From Trichoplax adhaerens (lineage: Eukaryota; Animalia; Placozoa): a stretch of DNA of 64,000 bases. Under the pieces are notes generated by a model. That model saw only the letters and a list, made by a program, of their open reading frames with translations. It was not told where the DNA came from and searched no databases. This document shows, one piece after another, positions 41,843-55,280 of the stretch. The stretch is taken from contig NW_002060946.1 in the NCBI RefSeq assembly GCF_000150275.1, positions 5,227,454-5,291,453 of the forward strand, written 5' to 3'. Made by a program: the position numbers and the translations under genes. Each line of letters opens with the position of its first letter. Within the stretch, counting starts at the first letter, position 1.

Positions 41843-44800
41843 TTTCGTAATACTGTACGTTTAGGGTGCAATGTGTATACCAGTTTTCCATAATGAAACA
41901 ATCGTGATTTCTTACTGTCTTTAGACCTTTTTGCCAGTATTTTAACACTCTAATGAGCATCAAAATGAAGTGCTCTCCAGTATCAGATGATGTGGGTGAT
42001 GAATCGGCGATCAAAGTAACTTCAACATTACTATTAACATGTTAATCGACTACACGGCATTTTATTACCGGCAATCATAACATCCATTACAACAGACCGA
42101 AAGTAGAAAGCAACCTACATGTTCCGAAGTATATAGGAAAGAATGTGAACTGCCTTTCTATTCATACTGTGACATGACATATCCTAATCCCCTTATTTAT
42201 TTAGAATGATATCTAGTCCCCGATTTAATACTGGGAATATCTTTGACACTTCTACGGTATACCCGTATATCGTACATCGTTTATTCACTGTCAACATGGA
42301 TTTGACGTACAGAACCACATTGTTCTGCATAAAAGTATACCCGAATTCTGGTTAAATAAATAAATACGACCGACGGGTATAAATATAAGTGAATATCAAA
42401 AAAGACCGAAATTGAATCATCTTTATGAAGTTGAAAAATCAACGATCCAACAAACATTCTTTCTTTTCTTTAATCAATTATGCAACATACAACAAGAATT
42501 GATTGCGATTTGCCCATATTTACACATTTTAGCAATGCTATGCACGTATATATAGGCTATTGACCAATACTAATACTAAGCGTAGACTTACCGAACGCTG
42601 ATACGTTAAATTGTCAACCTGGGTAGCGAGTATAGTTAACGAACAAGATTCTATTTCATATAAATCCATATTAAAGGTTAAATTGATGAAGCTGTCGCAG
42701 AAGTTCTTTTATTTTTAATAAAAGATTTTACTTCAGCGAAGAGACATTTTTTGTCTTTAGTAGACTACGGCAGTTTCGCTAAGTTATAGTGATTAGAAAT
42801 AATTACTAGTCTCCGACGTAGAACGAGCCATTCAATTAAAAGGGAAAATTGTCTATGTCATAGCTATGGTCGTGACATGAGCACTGCTTATACTCTTGTA
42901 TTTCCATAAACGACAGTACTGTGCGAATCACTTAAAAGCGTCAATACTGTAATTTCTGATCACATAATTAAAATTCGAATCTCTAACAAAATCAAGTTAA
43001 ATGAAAAATTAAAGGTGCTTCCAGTAATTTATGAATCCAAGAAGTTTTATATCAAAAAGCCATCCGGTGCCGTTATCTTGAAATAGTTAAGTGCAAATCT
43101 TATCTCACACTTTAAGTAATCGCATCCATATCACCTCGTCATCTAAGTAGATGTTAAATGTTCACTAGCACTTTTACTATACGTTATGGCTATAGTTGAC
43201 AACCTGTGGCGGTGGTCGTATGAAATAGTATGTGGAAAAGTACTCGCGTAAAATTTCCTGCATCAACTCTTGTCTAAGGATTCGGGTAATACCAGTGCAA
43301 AACTTCCATCTAAGAGAACTAAAAACCCTGGTAAATCCTTACTTACTAGGTCGAATTCATAGCTTTTAAGATTGCGGTATTCGTCATGTTATCCCATTTT
43401 ATTTGACTCTCTAATGCTCTGTAATATTGTGATCAAAGTATGACATTCTCAAAAATCATTTAACCCTTTCACTTCGTTCTTTAGATTTAGTACAGATCCA
43501 AGCAGCCATTACAAAAATCTGAATTAATAGCTACAACTTGGAATTAATAACAAAAATCCTAGTACTGTAATAAATTATCTAGGACAGCAATGTATTTACA
43601 CCATTTTATAACCAAAGTGAGTAGATCGTTTTATTTCCCAGCGAGATTAAGCAAATTTAAAGTGTTAGGCAATAGAAACTTATCAATTAGAAATAGCATA
43701 CTTTGCTAGATTAACTTGCACATCCATGATGAAAAATTGATTAAGCATCGCTAACTAGAACGTTCTAATAAAAAAAATTAAAAACTCATATTATCACCCA
43801 ACGTAGGGTATTGATGGGATCCTATACACTGTAATTAGAACCCTCGTCAGCCAATAGTGGTATGGATATGGCTCCAGCCTTCGCATTACCTTTTAGCACT
43901 CGCTTATTATTAACTGTACAAGTATGTGAAGAAAATGTTTTAAGAAATCCAAGCCGTAGTAGAAACATTTCCTTGCCGATGTTCAATGACGATCTATTAT
44001 TTAATTAAATTTCTACTTTATAGAAGTATTAAATTAAGTGTTTAACAGATATTCTTTTTTAATACATGCGATAATGTTGATTGTTAAATTCTTTCGTTTG
44101 TGGCTAGAAAATTTAAATATGTAAATAACCGGAAATATAACATCTACGCTGAATCCGCACTGATTTAAGTTGACAATAAAATGCCCGGTTTGTAAGCTTC
44201 AAAACAGTAGAATCGATGTTTCTAACATACAGTCCCTCATTCTTACTTAGAATACTGGCACGCATTCCTAAATGAAAATGATAAAAAATGTATTCCAGAC
44301 TATATATTAATATGCAATTGGAGTGCTGTCATATTATGATGCATCACTCAAAATTGCCTACTATAAAAATTATACCTGTGAGTAATTTACTATTTAAAAA
44401 TGTCAATTAATGCTGATGCAAAAAATTGTTATTGAAACGATTAATAAAGCAAAGCTTGACATCCGTCTTTGATACTTAGCAACGGTCAAGATGATATTGA
44501 ATGGTTGGAAAGCTAATTATGAAATTTAATCTTCTTTAATTTCAATAAATTGACGAAGTTCACGCTGATATAATTACATTCGATATTAAGATGATTTACT
44601 CCTTTCATCTCATCCATGATTTCAACCACGTTGAATATTTTTAAGAATAAATAATATAATGGAGACATCTAGCACAATTAATCGTGATCATTATCAATAG
44701 ATTCAGGAGGGGCAAATTATATTCTTGCATATTTAAGTGCTATTGTTGGTATCAATAACAAGCTACCAAGTAGATCCTCGCAGGTAACAACTTGGAAATC

Positions 44801-45228
44801 AATTAGAATAACAAAGGTAGCAATGTTAGGAGTGACGTTTTTTAATTAGATTAATCGATCGACAACATGTAAATAGAAAAGAGGTCTATTTATCTCTATT
44901 TCAAGTGCAATCCACTGTATATTATACAATACAAGTAGACTAGGACAGCAACGTAATAATATCATTAATTAGTATAAATTCAATATACCATAAGGCGGTT
45001 GTATTTGTGTCTATAGTGATCATAGTAATTGACTACCAGTAATGTAAAACTCGACCAACGATAACAACGACGACTTGGATGCCTGGGAATAGAGATAGTA
45101 CTGTAATTAGATAAGTTGTCTTCTTTAATATCATCCAACAGACTTTTTTAATTTGGTAGTATAGGATTCATGCAGTCTTGAAAAGGATTAACGTTATCTA
45201 GTCTATCGACAATTAAAAAGGGAACGTT

Positions 45229-48200
45229 ATGGTGGCAGAAGAAGATAGTGAGTTTGACGATTTTATGTTAGACATTTTGTTCGATGCGCAAGATGTTAAG
45301 AATGAATTGTGTGCTAAAGTTGCTCAACAACACGAGAGTAGAATCGCGGAAAATGGCCATCCTTGGTCACACTATGTCATCGGTAGGATGCTTTTTGAAG
45401 GCGTCCATCCATTCCACAAAAATGCCCATAAAGCTTTTGTACATATGACAATAGCAGCGGAGAAAAAAATCTATGAAGCTTATTGGTATCTATCACAAAT
45501 GTATGGCTATCGCCAGCAGAAAGTTCTTGCCGAATCGACTGTCAAACTTGTTAGCAGTCACAAAGCTATGTTGAAAATACAACTTCGAATGTGGGCAAAA
45601 TCGGCGATAGCTGGTCCTTATTTTTATTCTTTCTATTCATTGAAACAATTTAGTGATGATACTAAATCGTCTGCATTAGCGGCTAATGCCTATTGCGAAG
45701 TAATATCCAAATTATGTACCAAAATTAATGTCTTTAAGTTATGTAACCCTACCCCAACTGAACAATTGGGTCAGCATTACTTTGAATTAGCATGTTTACT
45801 ACTTTATACTGATGTCGATGACGAAGGGTTCGCTAAAAGAGTAGCTATACGATTGAAAATGTCGAAAATTGCCCGTGAATTACACGATGGTAATATCGAT
45901 CGAGATTGGACAGATCATTACGATGATATTAAAAAGATACTACCAGCAGTGACTATCGAATGCTTAATTAAAGCTGGTGAAAATGGGTGTCCTGCTGGAT
46001 TTTATTATTTACGCTATTTATATTGTCAAGATACTCAACTAATTTTATCACCCGAAGCCAATTATCACGCCATACAATTTCCTTGCCAAGTGGAAGAAAA
46101 TCGTACAGTAGCCTTTACTTATTTAAAACGTGCAGCAAGCGGTGGTCATCCTATGGCGCAATATGAAATTATTATTCGTGGTGATAGCAAATATCCCTAT
46201 CGCTATTTATTCGCTGGTATCTCATTAAGTGTACTATCAACCTATTTAGAAAGTCTATGTAATTATGGTTATAAACAAATTCTATTACTACTGGCTACAT
46301 GTTACTTTCGCGGAGTTGGTATTACAAGGGATAAGAAAAGGGCTCTAGATAGTTTAGAAGAAATGTTACTAGCGCCAAATATAGTTTATTTTCCCAATAT
46401 TATTGATCAAACACAGCATCAAGAATTAAGTCAAGATTTGCTGGAGCATAATATTTATGGCATTGCTGGATATCAATCACCAACACCAGTTCGTTGCTTC
46501 AACGGTAGCTTTGACAAATTTGATTACTTAACACCCTATCACTACTTTCTACTAGCATTTTTTTATGAACGTGGCTTAGGTATAACAAATCAAGATGAGA
46601 AAGCAGCTTCATTTTATCGCTTAAGTTATGAACTAATAGAGAAATTTTGTTATAATGACCAAGATCATTTCGTCCATTTCTATGGTATTTCACGCGGATA
46701 TTCTCTACTATCGTTATGTCGTATTGGTAAAATGATCGAAGGAGAAAAAATTGATTGTGACAATTTAACTTTAGCTGAAGAATGCTATAGACGAGCTTTA
46801 ACAACCCACATTTCAACGAATAAAGTATTACAATTTGCATATGCTTACTATCGACTGGGTAAATTTTATTCTAATCCTGATCATGGACAATACCGCAGTT
46901 TAGCTAAATCCTATTATAATTTCGATGAAGTTCTTTGCGTTGATCCTAATCAACCAGATTTATTTCGTAATTATTGCAGTTATTATATGGGAAAAATTTA
47001 TGACCAAGGTTTAGGTGGTGGAGAAGTCAACCATAGATTAGCAGCAATGAATTATTCCGGGTTGGCTGGTGTTATTAATGCGCATTTCCATCCATACTGT
47101 GATATTTACTTTACTTACATGCAGCAAAAAGCCAAGACCAGGATTAAATCAGAAGGTAAATCAATTTCAAAATTGTCCAACCTTTACCTGATATTGTTGA
47201 TCAATAATTTGACTATAGTTGTAATATTAAAGTCGATAAATTGAAAGTAGCATACTGCTTACGTTGATGAATGACATAATTACTGAAGAAAAGTTTGAGG
47301 CTGCAGCATTTTCTAATATTGATCGAAAATTAAGGTTGTACAGACAATTTACATACTACAATTAGATATTGCTTGTAAATCTGTAAACTTGAGGTTGGAA
47401 TAGTAATAAAAAATACGTATAGATAGACAATCCATAGACGAAACCATTCTTAAAACATTACACTTTATGAATCTTACAAGTGATGGCAACGAGACGCTGC
47501 AGTCCAATTTACTTTCAACTAGTCCATTAGCAGACGCAGTAATAGTATCAAGGTACAATATCAGCTATAGTCTAGCTACGATACTTTTTTAGCTGTCAGA
47601 ATACAGCTTCTAATGCATCTAACGTTCATAGATAAAATTTGGTTGTTAAAAAATGCAATTCAATTAACATTGATCGTTATTCCATCCATTCTGCTCGAGA
47701 AATAATCTATTTCTTCTAAATGTATTTTTAGTTCCCTTGGAAATCTTGCAGAAAGGGAAAAACGTTATTGCAACGTATGAAAAAGCATGCAAATATGGTA
47801 CTAGTACCATGGATGTTGTGCGAGTTCTCATTTTTGGAGTGGAAAACGTTGGAAAAACATCATTGCTGAAATCACTCATTGGTGAGGAAACAAAAACAGA
47901 CCAGTTACCAACAATCGACATTGATACTTCTAGAAGTGTAGACAGCTCAGATTGGGACGCTGATGGAAATATTAAGGAAGGTTGCCGCTATGATGTTGAG
48001 CGAGACGTTAGTACCGGAAGCGGGTACAATACTGATTCAGGTAATTTTGAAATAACATGGTAAATTATGATGTTAAGGAAATTTATCGGTCATGTTAGGT
48101 TATTTTGATATTTACAGCTGCGCTTTACATTAAAATAAAACTTAAAGTTACCTTCAATATGATCTGGCGAATGATTTAATCATGAAAATACTATTTACAG

Positions 48201-50329
48201 TTAATAACATCCTATTTGCAGCAATATTACTGTTACTTTTCATGCTCAGTAAATATTTTCAAACAAGCAATTTCTTACAAATCACCCATATTTAATCATT
48301 TCCACAGATGAAGAAGTTGTTATGGCTGCAGGCAAAAGAAACGGTGTAATTGAAAATGGCGATACGATGCACTCAGGAAATCAGATACAAAATCATAGTG
48401 ATGAAGATAAAAATAATAAGAATATTTCACATAAATCAGATAAATCACAGACTCAACAGGGTGTGAAGAATGATGCAAATTCTGGTCATCTCTTTATTGA
48501 AGCTGGGATAAGTGGAGGAAAAGGTCTGTTGAAAACTGTTTTAAGAAAAGGTATGGCAGAAAAATTACGAGCCACATTACAACAAGCTAGTGATAAACAA
48601 AAGAGCAATGCAAAACAAAGTGATGAGCAAAGATCTCGAAGTCGTTCATTGCAAACTAAATCGAAATCAAAGAAACATAGGAGTACAAGTGCCCATGAGA
48701 TGCCATCTGAACCTCGTGAAAGAAAATATTCATTGCAAGGCAATATTCGCAGTAATAGCCGAGGAAATAACGATCGATGTAAAACACCACCCTTGACAAA
48801 AGAGGAAAGTGGAATGCAATTGAAATTTTGGGATTTCAGCGATAGCTTTGAATACTATACAACCAAGTTATCATCACGTAGCTCTATCTATATCCTCGTT
48901 TTTAATGCAGCCAAGCATATAGAAGAAATGATTGAAAAAAGAGACGGTAGTCACGATATCTATACGTATTTGGATAAGATGACGACTTGGCTTCAGTCCA
49001 TACATTTACATACGTTACGAGAAGAGGATTGCATATTAGGGAATGATTTATCGTTTTCACCTCCAGCAATTATCCTTGTTGGTACTCATGGTGATGAAAT
49101 TCAAATTGAAAACGAAGAGGAAAGAACAAATAAAATAAATCAGATGTACGCTGAGATCATGGGTGCTTTAGAAGANNNNNNNNNNNNNNNNNNNNNNNNN
49201 NNNNNNNNNNNNNNNNNNNNNNNNNNNNNNNNNNNNNNNNNNNNNNNNNNNNNNNNNNNNNNNNNNNNNNNNNNNNNNNNNNNNNNNNNNNNNNNNNNNN
49301 NNNNNNNNNNNNNNNNNNNNNNNNNNNNNNNNNNNNNNNNNNNNNNNNNNNNNNNNNNNNNNNNNNNNNNNNNNNNNNNNNNNNNNNNNNNNNNNNNNNN
49401 NNNNNNNNNNNNNNNNNNNNNNNNNNNNNNNNNNNNNNNNNNNNNNNNNNNNNNNNNNNNNNNNNNNNNNNNNNNNNNNNNNNNNNNNNNNNNNNNNNNN
49501 NNNNNNNNNNNNNNNNNNNNNNNNNNNNNNNNNNNNNNNNNNNNNTACGAGAAAAGATATCGCTTTAGCTGTGATGCAACATCTTGACTTAATTTGTCAG
49601 CAAAGCAGTCAAGCAGAAAGTAAAGAATCGGGTAAAGAAACTAATGCTAAAGGGCGGCATAAAGATAAAGCCAAGTATTATTATGCGCCATGTACCATGA
49701 GTAACATTAGTTTGCCAACAGATGAGGAATTATATCCACAAGATTGCATACAATCTGTTTGGTTAAAGATAAAGTTCAAAGATGAAATACCTGATATTAC
49801 ATTTTATCGTTTACTAACATGTTGCTTACGGAAATGGAATACCAACCCCAAGCTATATAGAAATTGCGTTATCTATTCCATAGCTACGCAAGTTTCTTTA
49901 ATAATAAAAAAAGAAGGCATTCATGTTGGATTACAGATATTATTTCGTCCAGTGAATAAGAATGAATCCAAACGAGAAATTGATGATAAAATGATTACCA
50001 ACGGGATTGGAATTGCAGCACGAGTTCATGTTGAAAAACAACTTGTAAAATTGCTTAAAAAATGGAATGCTAGCATGAAAAAACAGTATTCACTTTATTT
50101 TTTATGTCCATGCATTTGTCAGACTAATCAAGATCATCTTGACGATGAAATGAAGCAAAAAGTTTGCAATAATTTTATTAATCTAGGCAATGTTATCAAC
50201 ACCTTAGAAGCAAGTAAAGATCAAAAAATTCAGTACAAAGACATCCATTGTGATAATTGCAATCAAGCATTCAGTAGCATGAATTATTTAAAATTTTGGT
50301 TTAAATTGCCTGATGAAAATTTGCAATAG
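45229..50329 (+). CDS. Sel1-like repeat - Roc - COR (Roco-family) protein; exons 45229-47155, 47732-48040, 48308-(gap)-50329
   Basis: SLR motifs: YLKRAASGGHPMAQ, LATCYFRGVGITRDKKRA, LAFFYERGLG, MGKIYDQGLG. Phase-1 splices join these to VPLEILQKG..., P-loop GVENVGKTS, WDFS...IYILVFN and IILVGTHGD. A COR-like C-terminus follows (YYAPC...PDITFYRLLTCC). An in-frame stop lies upstream of ATG 45229. Confidence 0.8.
49176..49545. other. Assembly gap (370 N) inside the Roc-COR coding region
   Basis: Run of n. Confidence 1.
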
Positions 50330-51944
50330 TAATTTATTAGCATGCCTGTGCTCTACCAAGTTAAAATTGAATTAGTACGCAAATAGAGGCAATTAATGTA
50401 AAATTATCCTGCACTATTGTTTCTCTATTCCAAAATGCTATATAATATATTTGTGATTAATATTATTATAGTGCATATCAATATTGTACTAGCAAGCAAC
50501 TGATGGCCGCCGGTTCATATTTGTGTATGTACGCGTATAAAACGGTAATAAATTATCCATTAATGATGTGAATACGCACCACGGTGCTTGATATTCAACG
50601 AACTTGATTTTGCTTGACGAAGGCAAGGACTACTGCACTAGAAATATCGCTTTTATTATCGAATAGTCCATGACGGAGGCCAAAATAGGTGGTATTACTA
50701 AACTCTAGCTTTAACTTACGATTGTGTTCCATTTTGAACACTTTACCAGTTATACCCGCACTCAACTGCAACATTATATACTATACGCAAATATTGAGTA
50801 GCGATGGAAATGAAGTAGAAACTGAAAGAAAACTTGAATAGTGGACTATTGATCTATCATTAATGAATAAAGTAGTTACAGTACAGACTCCACTTCATCT
50901 TGCACAAGCAGATTAATTTTATAATGTGAAATTGGCTCCATGATACCAAAATGACTACTTGAAATTCTAATGTAATTGACAAGCTCAGTTAAGAATATAC
51001 CGTTTGAAAGTTTTCATCCCTTTTATTTCTTTCTCGTATATTCAGCTTCAAAGAAACCTCCACTCAGCAGGTTTCGTATAGAAAGTAAAGGTTACAGCTT
51101 GATGGCGCATTAAACTCCTAAAGTACAATCTCTACGTCGAGTAACATTTCTTACGGGAAGTTTTGAACGATATCACGTCCAATTCCCTCTGTTGTTCCAC
51201 TGCGAATTGTATTGAATTATTATGATTTAGTTCATTACTTAGGTTAGCATCGTACTGAAGCAATTTCTAATTTCGTTTGCTTGCATATTACAGATTCATT
51301 AGTGATGATAAAAATCAAACTATTAGAATAAGAACTAGTAATTCTGATGATGTATCATCTTATTACGTCAACTTGGTTCGTCTAATAAATTACAGTATGT
51401 TCAGCCTACAACTGTAGCTACCGCATAATTCTCTCTGTGTCATCGTTACTTACTTTCATAGAGAGAAACGAAACGATGACCGAGAGGGAAGGCATAACAA
51501 TTAATTAGTGATTAGAATTAGTGAAAATTACACTTCAAGCTTCTCGCAGAAATTATGAAGGATTTCGCTATCATCGCCTTTAAGCTCTTTAGTGACATTA
51601 AGAAATAATACAGGAAAATTTGCATCTAGTACAATAGTAAATCATCCATTGCATGGAGTTTTTTTTTTTCGCCTGGCCCTCTGGTCATCAATACCAGGAA
51701 CTTCTAAAAAGAGAAAATTCCTGTCCAAAGTCCCTATTAACATGCTATCCTCTGCTCTCAATACCAGTGTGGTTTTACTGTGCTTTCAACTGACGTGAGC
51801 ATGAGTAATGGGGTTACTATGACTGAGTTCTATCTATGGGAAGAAAAAGTCTTTTTTCTTTTACCTCTACCGGGCCGCGGCTAAAACCTATCCAACCAAC
51901 AGTTGTATACTGGTTGAAAGGTGTTCAGCTATAGTGCAGCTTTT

Positions 51945-54436
51945 AATATCTGATATTTTCTTGTACCTCTCTATGGCTAGTAGTACTATCAGCGATTATT
52001 AACGTACTACCATGAACTTGTAGAAATTATACAGTATATCTGATAATTTCTTGTATCTCTCTATGGGTAGTAGCACTATCGGTGACTAATAAAGAGCGAG
52101 CATGAACTTGTATATGCCTACAGTCCATGTAAGGGTCTGGGCAATTACATGGACCGTCACATATACATATATATCTGATATTTTCTTGTATCTCTCTATG
52201 GGTAGTAGTACTATCAGCGAGTACTAAAGAGCGAGCATGAACTTGAATGCTGTACATATATATCTGCTATTTTCTTGGAACTCTCCATGAGTGGTAGTCT
52301 ATCAGCGCGACTGCTAAAGAGCTAGCATGGACTTGTAGAAATATACTGTACATCTAATATTTTCTTGTATCTTTCTATGAGTAGTAGTACGATCAGCGAT
52401 TGCTACTAGCATGAACTTGTAGAAATAAACACTCTATCTGATATTTATTTTCTTGTATCTCTATGGGTAGTAGTACGATCAGCGATTGCTACTAGCATGA
52501 ACTTGTAGAAATAAACTGTATATCTGATATTTTCTTGTATCTCTATGGGTAGTAGTACGATCAGCGATTGCTACTAGCATGAACTTGTAGAAATATACAG
52601 TATATCTGATATTTTGTTGTATCTCTATGGGTAGTAGTACTTGTAACGAGGTCAAGAATCTGAGACTTTGAGCTTTCCTTTAGTCTACTTTATTGGAAGT
52701 ACATGCCAAGCGCGATATCATACACACGTTAACTAGACGTAAGAACTGTGACAACAAATCAGCTCTAGTACGAACATAACTTTAATACCATATCCTAATG
52801 CAGGTGAACATTTATAACATATGATCTTAATCTAGTATAGTAGATAAGCCGTAAATAGTATTGTACGATATCTAGGATTGCCTACGAACTACAAGGTAAC
52901 AAGCAGAGTTTACAGAGCGAGCATGGACTGGTAGAAATATTTATCTGATATTTTCTTGTATCTCTTTATAGGTAGTAGTACTATCAGCGAGTAAAGAAGT
53001 AGCATGGACTTGTAGCCATATGCATCTGATACTTTCTTGTATCTCTCTATGGGTAGTAGTACTGTTACGGCGTACTATCAGCAACTGCTAAAGAGCGAGC
53101 ATGGACTGATAGAAATATGTATGTGATATTTTCTTGCATCTCTTTATGGGTGGTAGTAGTACTATCAGCGAGTAAAGAAGTAACATGGACTTGTAGCCAT
53201 ATGCATTTGATATTTTCTTGTATCTCTCTATGGGTAGTAGTGCTATCAGCAACTGCTAAAGAACTAGCATGAACTTGTAGAAATAAACACTATATCTGAT
53301 ATTTTCTTGTATCTCTATGGGTAATAGTACGATCAGCGATTGCTACTAGCATGAACTTGTAGAAATATACAGTATATCTGATATTTTGTTGTATCTCTAT
53401 GGGTAGTAGTACGATCAGCGATTGCTACTAGCATGAACTTGTAGAAATAAACTGTATATCTGATATTTTGTTGTACCTCTATGGGTAGTAGTACGATCAG
53501 CGATTGCTACTAGCATGAACTTGTAGAAACGTACAGTATATCTGATATTTTGTTCTATCTCTTTATGGATAGTAGTACTATCAGCGACTGCTAAAGAACT
53601 AGCATGAACTTGTAGAAATATACAGTATATCTGATATTTTGTTCTATCTCTTTATGGATAGTAGTACTATCAGCGACTGCTAAAGAACTAGCATGAACTT
53701 GTAGAAATAAACACTATATCTGATATTTTCTTGTATCTCTCTATGGGTAGTAGCACTATCGGTGACTAATAAAGAGCGAGCATGAACTGGTATATGCCAA
53801 CGGTCCATGTAAGGGTCTGGGCAATTACATGGACTGTCACATATACATATCTATCTGATATTTTCTTGTATCTCTCTATGGGTAGTAGTACTATCAGCGA
53901 GTACTAAAGAGCGAGCATAAACTTGAATGCTGTGCATATATATCTGCTATTTTCTTGGAACTCTCCATGAGTGGTAGTCTATCAGCGCGACTGCTAAAGA
54001 GCTAGCATGGACTTGTAGAAATATACTGTACATCTGATATTTTCTTGTATCTTTCTATGAGTAGTAGTACGATCAGCGATTGCTACTAGCATGAACTTGT
54101 AGAAATAAACTGTTTATCTGATATTTTGTTGTATCTCTATGGGTAGTAGTACGATCAGCGATTGCTACTAGCATGAACTTGTAGAAATATACAGTATATC
54201 TGATATTTTCTTCTATCTCTTTATGGATAGTAGTACTATCAGCGACTGCTAAAGAACTAGCATGAACTTGTAGAAATATACAGTATATCTGATATTTTCT
54301 TCTATCTCTTTATGGATAGTAGTACTATCAGTAACTGCTAAAGAGCGAGCATGGACTGGTAGAAATATGTCAATGATATTTTCTTGCATCTCTTTATGGG
54401 TAGTAGTACTATCAGCGAGGAAAGAAGTAGCATGGA
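51945..54436. repeat. Large minisatellite, ~80-89 bp unit, >20 copies, with higher-order duplication and a unique insert (~52625-52905)
   Basis: Unit tatctgatattttcttgtatctctctatgggtagtagtactatcagcga...agcatgaacttgtagaaat. The block at ~52036-52430 is repeated 1680 bp downstream. Confidence 0.97.
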
Positions 54437-55280
54437 GTTGGAGAAAGCTAGCAGTAGCATGGAGGATAATTTAGAAAAGTCTGCAGGCAGAATCAAGTCT
54501 GATAGAGTACCAATGTCGAGATACTACATGATATGACATCATTCCATGGAGTTCGGTTGGGCACAGTACCAGGTCCGGTACCAAGATGTTCCACATAGTC
54601 TTGATGTTGACGATCGGGCGGGGGACTAGTGGAAGTGGTTGCAATTGGCTGCTACGCCAAGCATGCACTGAGTAGGGTAAGGAAGACAGCAGGGACTGCT
54701 ATTGCTACTGTATGGGGATTTACCCAGTGGATTGAACTTAGTGGTCGAAATTGATTCCGGTAGATTTGATTTACTGTTACAACTTGATTGGATTGGATAG
54801 ACAAACTGGGTGGAAAAATACACTAGGCAACGAATTGGATCTCTATCCATGCTTGTATCAATAAGCTTTGAAAAAGCTTGAAGGATATTATTGGATCATT
54901 CGGGGGTACATTAACACCGTGTTGCATTCAAATCCACTATTCAAACGTTTCCATTGGCGATTGAAAAAGAACGCAATTCACCATCAAAATCATTCTCCAA
55001 AACGGTTTGCTTTGATCGAGAAGGTCAAGATAGGAGAAGAGCTTGTCCTATCATTTGTTCTTGTATTCTGCTAACCAACTGATAGACGATTGAATTATTG
55101 TACAAGTTTAGACTAGAAAAAGAGACCCACTTTGCTCCTCCAATGCAGACTAAAAAGAAAGTAATGATGACCATCATGGCGTTCTACTACAGGCATTAAA
55201 GTCTTTCCAACCAGTCACGATAGACGAGCATCCCAAAGCTTGTAGTCGACAGGCAAGAGTCCTACTTCACTTCTTTCAAG

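Follow-up and report, generated by a model that had tools for sequence, protein, structure and literature searches.

Roco proteins have been studied mainly through LRRK2, and the cross-talk between their repeat arm, Roc-COR switch and output is still debated. The placozoan set is among the largest and most modular – no fewer than 17 ROCO genes are described in Trichoplax adhaerens, with CARD, death, tetratricopeptide-repeat (TPR), leucine-rich-repeat (LRR), AAA, MBT, SH3, TIR and Ras-like modules (Civiero et al. 2014, PMC4104024). A 2024 paper restates this expansion (PMC11378527), which the initial annotation of the DNA analyzed here had also mentioned. We examined a 64,000-nucleotide (nt) stretch of the T. 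adhaerens genome (RefSeq assembly GCF_000150275.1, contig NW_002060946.1), hereafter the window. Positions 45229-50329 of its forward strand very probably constitute one protein-coding gene that joins a Sel1-like-repeat (SLR) solenoid to Roc and COR, with no kinase and no death fold.

The initial annotation had proposed such a joined SLR-Roc-COR gene and interpreted its architecture as that of an immune or symbiont receptor. The observation is confirmed by the analyses below, and the interpretation is partly supported. Since the Roco family, its modularity and the absence of kinases in Trichoplax are already published, the finding is incremental; what the gene adds is Sel1-like as a repeat class joined to Roc-COR. 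We found no report of Sel1 repeats paired with Roc-COR in the searchable literature. A gene whose COR-A lies in an assembly gap, as is the case here, would be missed by a COR-based BLAST survey.

Among characterized proteins, one close in layout is the Chlorobium tepidum Roco protein (PDB 3dpt, 3dpu and 6hlu), which shares a kinase-less repeat-Roc-COR organization. It differs in having an LRR arm, an uninterrupted Roc, a canonical DxxG motif and no Cys-rich tail, and its sequence identity to the Trichoplax gene is ~10%. LRRK2, LRRK1, DAPK1 and MFHAS1 share the Roc-COR core, and the COR region described below matches the folds of LRRK2 and LRRK1. Unlike these four proteins, the Trichoplax gene lacks kinase, ankyrin, LRR, WD40 and death domains – and an N-terminal SLR array is absent from all of them.

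The region contains four open reading frames (ORFs) on the forward strand. As the initial annotation had noted, the first three join in frame through two phase-1 introns with canonical GT-AG splice sites. The boundaries read CAGAAG/gtaaat (47155/47156) and ttttag/TTCCC (47731/47732) for intron 1, and TTCAG/gtaatt (48040/48041) and ccacag/ATGAAG (48307/48308) for intron 2; G+C content is 0.36-0.41 in the exons versus 0.27-0.31 in the introns. Exon 2 needs exon 3, because G1 and G2 lie in the former and G3 and G4 in the latter, and together they make up one Roc domain. The encoded protein would comprise ~1,400-1,450 residues and at least three exons. Domain, homology and fold searches were all made exon by exon, and searches of the T. 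adhaerens genome covered 105.6 Mb in 1,414 contigs.

Ortholog sequences were identified on two contigs. The first, a 3.7-kb genomic contig from a related placozoan (L001; Logan SRR30664516), shows ~80% nucleotide identity to exon 1 and has both splice sites of intron 1, donor and acceptor, at the bases where the Trichoplax gene has them. Similarity is lost right after the donor and returns 5 nt before the exon-2 acceptor, and the intron between them, ~265 nt long in L001, is unalignable. Indels within exon 1 are all multiples of three, the ATG at 45229 is kept with only patchy similarity upstream of it, and the first 21 codons of exon 2 contain seven synonymous changes and one non-synonymous change. 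The second, an ortholog fragment (P0045, on contig L048; ENA ERZ23499115), is 75% identical to the ORF that follows the assembly gap. Because the ratio of non-synonymous to synonymous substitution rates (dN/dS) is 0.055 for exon 1 (dN 0.088, dS 1.60) and 0.062 for the post-gap ORF (dS above 1.5), sequence comparison indicates that purifying selection is strong at both ends of the gene across placozoan lineages.

We observed that exon 1 scores 36.4 bits against the Pfam Sel1 model (cut-off 30.7), with two repeats individually significant, though the model covers only part of its 642 residues. A HMMER search of 1.84 billion representatives returned one close relative, the L001 ortholog (P0001), and 43 weak matches. 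All six long remote matches that were scanned proved to be strong Sel1-repeat proteins, and none of the six contained Roc or COR. An AlphaFold2 model of the exon (predicted local distance difference test, pLDDT, 74; predicted template modeling score, pTM, 0.79) consists of 31 helices. Its top Foldseek matches in the PDB are 6ok3, SEL1L, 4bwr, LceB, LpnE and HcpC, with Sel1 proteins ranking ahead of TPR proteins, and its Sel1 fold matches include Oxalobacter SLR proteins and Escherichia coli c5321. The model thus indicates that exon 1 is an SLR solenoid, probably a cytosolic one; the ~640 residues of SLRs ahead of Roc in the initial annotation are a fair description at the level of fold. SEL1L/Hrd3, HcpC, LpnE and c5321 share this solenoid but are secreted, endoplasmic-reticulum-luminal or bacterial effector scaffolds without a GTPase, whereas the SLR arm described here is fused to Roc-COR and has no signal-like N-terminus when judged by eye.

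We also considered that exon 1 might be a diverged form of the TPR exon found in other members of the family. This was rejected: Pfam TPR_12 had no match in exon 1, comparison with one paralog TPR exon revealed no similarity (E 0.12), and the gene falls outside the TPR-type clade.

Elsewhere in the genome, the closest relative of exon 1 is a single-exon Sel1 ORF at C1409:5575426-5575812 (28% identity, E 2e-9). Single-exon Sel1-repeat ORFs of 530-1,180 residues form clusters at C1414:1.92-1.96 Mb, C1411:573-591 kb and C1401:1.26-1.32 Mb, which looks like an expansion of SLR genes in placozoans.

Roc begins in exon 2, where it is the best-matching P-loop family (PF08477, 24.4 bits; cut-off 27); both an intron and an insert divide the domain. 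The best PDB sequence match of exon 2 is 4wnr (E 1.5e-4), which is titled ‘Leucine-rich-repeat protein’ and which we take to be Methanosarcina barkeri Roco2. The next matches are C. tepidum Roco chains, and the alignment includes the helix preceding G1. For the Roc half encoded by exon 3 we found no Pfam match and no significant PDB sequence match. Of the Pfam matches that the initial annotation had called for, then, Sel1 was recovered above its cut-off, Roc fell below its own, and COR-A had no match at the locus in a six-frame search with PF16095.

Comparison with the parental genome clarified the assignment. Exon 2 aligns to the N-termini of paralogs, and the C-terminal half of exon 3 matches at least 40 places in the genome. 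In total, we identified at least 50 six-frame COR-A matches, ~40 of them over the cut-off, and at least 40 Roc-COR paralogs. Four paralogs that were scanned scored 29.6-44.4 bits for Roc and 42.9-63.7 bits for COR-A, all above the cut-offs. Because pieces of the gene align, within the same open frames, on both sides of COR-A in these Roc- and COR-A-positive paralogs, we assign it to the Roco family.

An alignment with 11 of the paralogs was used to compare the nucleotide-binding motifs (Table 1). G1, the conserved part of G2 and G4 are retained, and G3 is degenerate, reading DFSD in place of DxxG with the loss of both glycines. Between G2 and strand 3 lies a low-complexity, probably disordered insert of ~208 residues in which Ser, Lys, Gly and Asn abound; exon 2 encodes 40 of these residues and exon 3 the other 168. 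The exon-3 insert frame has no stop in 165 codons at 33% GC, against 6 and 25 stops in the other two frames. Paralogs carry an insert of ~100 residues at the same site of Roc. This insert had been overlooked in the initial annotation – as had the Cys-rich tail and the position of COR-A inside the gap.

The ORF that follows the gap has no Pfam or PDB sequence match. Its residues 40-190 align with the stretch immediately following Pfam COR-A in at least 34 paralogs from the same genome, and a model built by AlphaFold2 with 10 paralogs (pLDDT 71) retrieved COR structures as all of its top 17 Foldseek matches in the PDB (C. tepidum Roco, LRRK2 and LRRK1; E-values to 2e-4, probabilities 0.94-1.0). 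The leading matches are 3dpt, 3dpu and 6hlu, followed by LRRK2 and LRRK1, and C. tepidum Roco is the best structural match (template modeling score ~0.5, probability 1.0). The COR-like character ascribed to this ORF in the initial annotation is thereby upheld. COR-B is followed by a short tail with a CxC...CxxC pattern, which aligns with CxxC...CxxC in the paralogs and would be zinc-ribbon-like.

The gene likewise ends without a kinase, as had been proposed: no kinase follows COR, the ORF stopping 195 codons past the start of COR-B and the paralog ORFs ending at the same point. The ortholog stop lies one codon later, and homology ends ~10 nt beyond. Six-frame searches for Death (PF00531) and CARD (PF00619) across positions 45229-55280 found neither at E<=0.1, a threshold that a very divergent death fold could escape. 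An alternative donor, TA/GTAATT, overlaps the stop codon at 50327-50329; we rejected it as a splice site, since the ortholog lacks the donor and its phase would be wrong for the tail exons of the family.

An assembly gap separates the Roc and COR-B segments. Its left flank stops ~26 residues past G4, and its right flank, in the frame from 49547, starts in the last helix of COR-A. In 11 paralogs the same two points are 180-202 residues apart (540-606 nt) within one open frame. Paralog spacing suggests that the true gap is probably 540-606 nt and that the 370 N of the assembly are too short. Because the gap length is only an estimate and the paralog spacing is longer, the +1 frame offset across the 370 N is uninformative. 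The ortholog fragment P0045 extends 48-61 codons further upstream in frame and aligns there with the C-terminal part of paralog COR-A. Taken with the paralogs, this makes continuity from Roc to COR across the gap likely.

Other approaches to the gap returned little. Pfam had no match to P0045, which includes the last ~50 residues of COR-A, or to the first, 46-residue frame of L048. A search of the T. adhaerens genome for an unplaced contig with the absent COR-A retrieved only weak paralog matches, and the exon-3 ORF, when translated through the gap and used as query in a word-index protein search, had no match. A 41-nt tandem duplication within L048:60-180, just upstream of the COR-A-matching frame, coincides with a change of frame; an intron, a genuine duplication or an assembly error could each account for it.

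Relative to the other Roc-COR genes of Trichoplax, the gene described here has a familiar core and an unfamiliar arm. It shares with its paralogs the Roc-COR-Cys-rich cassette (25-45% identical), the G2-G3 insert, the lack of a kinase, an N-terminal helical-repeat arm and a phase-1 intron before the cassette; the acceptor of the paralog Roc exon is in phase 1 and ~four codons from that of this gene. It differs in having an additional intron inside Roc, an insert twice as long and a G3 that has lost both glycines. In 8 of 10 sampled paralogs (loci L037-L047, e.g., C1375:192650-199650 and C1392:634900-641900), a TPR_12/TPR_10 exon of 389-548 residues lies 50-1,800 nt upstream on the same strand, and in many paralogs COR-A is followed 1-2 kb downstream by a match to Death or CARD. 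In contrast to the TPR-Roc-COR paralogs, this gene has a Sel1-like arm and no Death/CARD exon after the cassette.

The SLR arm is not a recurrent feature of the family. The genome has 71 Sel1 matches, and none is closer than 100 kb to another COR-A match (of at least 50). In an unrooted tree of the COR-B region, the gene and its ortholog occupy a long branch, group with two paralogs that have nearby CARD matches and stand apart from the TPR-type clade. Within the placozoan Roc-COR-Cys cassette family, the gene would represent an old and divergent lineage. A phase-1 intron stands in this family between the cassette and a variable N-terminal module – SLR here, TPR_12 or CARD elsewhere. As judged from sequence, the N-terminal modules ahead of the cassette appear to be exchangeable, and the SLR arm has so far been seen as a partner only here. 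The proposal in the initial annotation that SLRs replace LRRs therefore holds for the SLR arm itself and fails in its choice of comparison, the usual module of the family being a TPR_12 exon or CARD.

Several observations weigh against reading the region as a single intact gene. Pfam signal is low, with Roc under its cut-off on exon 2 and silent on its exon-3 half. The Cys-rich tail has low model confidence and is partially conserved (CPCIC here, CPCVS in the ortholog). COR-A and G5 fall within the gap, where a frameshift, a stop or an extra intron is possible, and L048 does not keep the frame over its 5' 180 nt. The exon joins, that of intron 2 included, are read from genomic sequence, and the ortholog sequences cover the join at intron 1.

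This last point, which leaves room for two adjacent genes, has to be set against the ortholog evidence. The exon-1 frame reads 29 codons past the donor before reaching a stop (47242-47244), which would yield a stand-alone SLR protein of 671 residues followed by a separate Roc-COR gene, and SLR ORFs of 530-640 residues that stand alone in a single exon are indeed numerous in the genome. However, those 29 codons are unconserved in L001 while the donor GT is conserved, and the coding conservation of exon 2 starts right at the acceptor. A separate downstream gene would also have to begin at the sole in-frame ATG of exon 2, 8 codons before G1, which would remove a pre-G1 helix common to the paralogs and the ortholog – and the paralogs, too, have a phase-1 acceptor at this position, requiring an upstream exon. 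We regard two genes as the least probable of the readings considered here.

A decaying or broken gene would account for the degenerate G3 (DFSD instead of DxxG) and the 208-residue low-complexity insert in Roc as erosion, with a lesion hidden in the gap, where COR-A is placed and across which the written frames differ. Such decay is difficult to reconcile with a dN/dS of ~0.06 on both sides of the gap at an ortholog dS above 1.5. All readable parts are open, including a stop-free insert of 165 codons; in the paralogs, too, this site is occupied by an insert, of ~100 residues, and the gap length that sets the frame offset is an estimate. We therefore consider decay very unlikely. Bacterial contamination or a horizontally transferred fragment was ruled out by the spliceosomal introns, the host-like GC content (0.32-0.41) and the presence of orthologs on two placozoan-like contigs. 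A single SLR-Roc-COR gene under selection remains the reading that we favor.

We next consider what such a protein might do. By analogy with C. tepidum Roco and LRRK2 models, Roc-COR would act as a nucleotide-dependent conformational and dimerization device, and the SLR arm would bind a protein or other ligand. Because G3 reads DFSD and not DxxG and there is no enzymatic or death-fold output, the protein would be a scaffold or adaptor, slow-cycling or locked, rather than an autonomous signaling enzyme; pairing with other Roco proteins through COR would be possible. That ligand binding, dimerization and an impaired GTPase are all taken over from studied Roco proteins counts against this proposal. 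Provided that the gene is real, we give the slow-cycling scaffold or adaptor about an even chance, and favor it by analogy over an autonomous immune receptor. A member of the family with no output and a degenerate G3 that is still under selection would be a natural test of Roc-COR as a pure scaffold and dimerization device.

In line with the immune or symbiont receptor of the initial annotation, the protein might instead be an intracellular sensor of patterns or symbionts, with signaling like that of an NLR. The interplay between hosts and bacteria commonly involves SLR proteins, the layout combines a repeat arm with an NTPase switch, and the family has undergone a lineage-specific expansion in which other members have Death/CARD matches close downstream. 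This gene, however, has no output domain, death-fold or other, and its G3 is degenerate; it is represented by a single conserved ortholog under strong purifying selection and is not a fast-evolving copy. As to a NACHT or NB-ARC STAND ATPase, the gene produced only weak, P-loop-level matches (nSTAND6, E 0.12), and at the level of sequence the likeness to NLR or STAND receptors is one of layout only. We consider a sensor of this kind rather unlikely. A more speculative extension of the scaffold model is that a conserved, output-less regulator with an impaired GTPase works as an adaptor or decoy in a placozoan-specific Roco signaling network, either paired through COR with Death/CARD-adjacent paralogs or using its Sel1 arm to tether a ligand from bacteria or symbionts. 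We hold this to be improbable; if true, the role would be analogous to that of helper and decoy members of NLR networks.

Table 1. Coordinates of the SLR-Roc-COR gene and its landmarks in the window
Feature	Position	Strand	Description
Exon 1	45229..47155	+	ATG start; 642 codons + 1 base; Sel1-like-repeat alpha-solenoid
Intron 1	47156..47731	+	Phase 1, GT-AG; both sites at the same bases in L001
Exon 2	47732..48040	+	Pre-G1 helix, G1, G2, start of insert
G1	47836-47859	+	GVENVGKT; intact in this gene
G2	47905-47913	+	LPT; PT conserved in this gene and in paralogs
Intron 2	48041..48307	+	Phase 1, GT-AG; read-through meets a stop after 7 codons
Exon 3 to gap	48308..49175	+	168-residue insert, strand 3, G3, G4
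G3	48832-48843	+	DFSD, in WDFSDS; most paralogs WDFGGH or WDFAGH, two CDFGDQ
G4	49084-49095	+	THGD; most paralogs SHGD, THGD and SHAD/SHSD also seen
Assembly gap, 370 N	49176..49545	.	Expected to hold G5, which ends Roc, and almost the whole of COR-A
Post-gap coding stretch	49546..50329	+	Last COR-A helix, COR-B, Cys-rich tail; stop 50327-50329
COR-B start	49676	+	YYYAPC
Cys motif	50105	+	CPC
Cys motif	50249-50260	+	CDNC

Outside the coding region, we observed a block of ~60 nt at positions 44790-44850 of the window, ~380-440 nt upstream of the ATG, that is near-identical in L001 between diverged flanks. Stops interrupt the block in each of the six frames and Rfam returned no match to it; it may be a promoter or 5' untranslated region element.

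The genome searches also revealed several features of the wider Roc-COR family. Paralogs often occur in tandem arrays, as at C1404 0.93-0.97 Mb, C1392 12-50 kb and C1389 264-281 kb. One of the 10 sampled paralogs has, in place of a TPR exon, an upstream ORF of 169 residues resembling APAF1_C (L044:624-1130, on C1383; PF17908, 31 bits). This APAF-1 helical-domain ORF hints at an NB-ARC-related module fused to, or located beside, a Roco cassette. Finally, a Roc match at C1404:1785339-1785671 lies within an open frame of 2,750 residues, where the usual cassette exon spans 700-800 residues, and may belong to a giant single-exon Roco gene.

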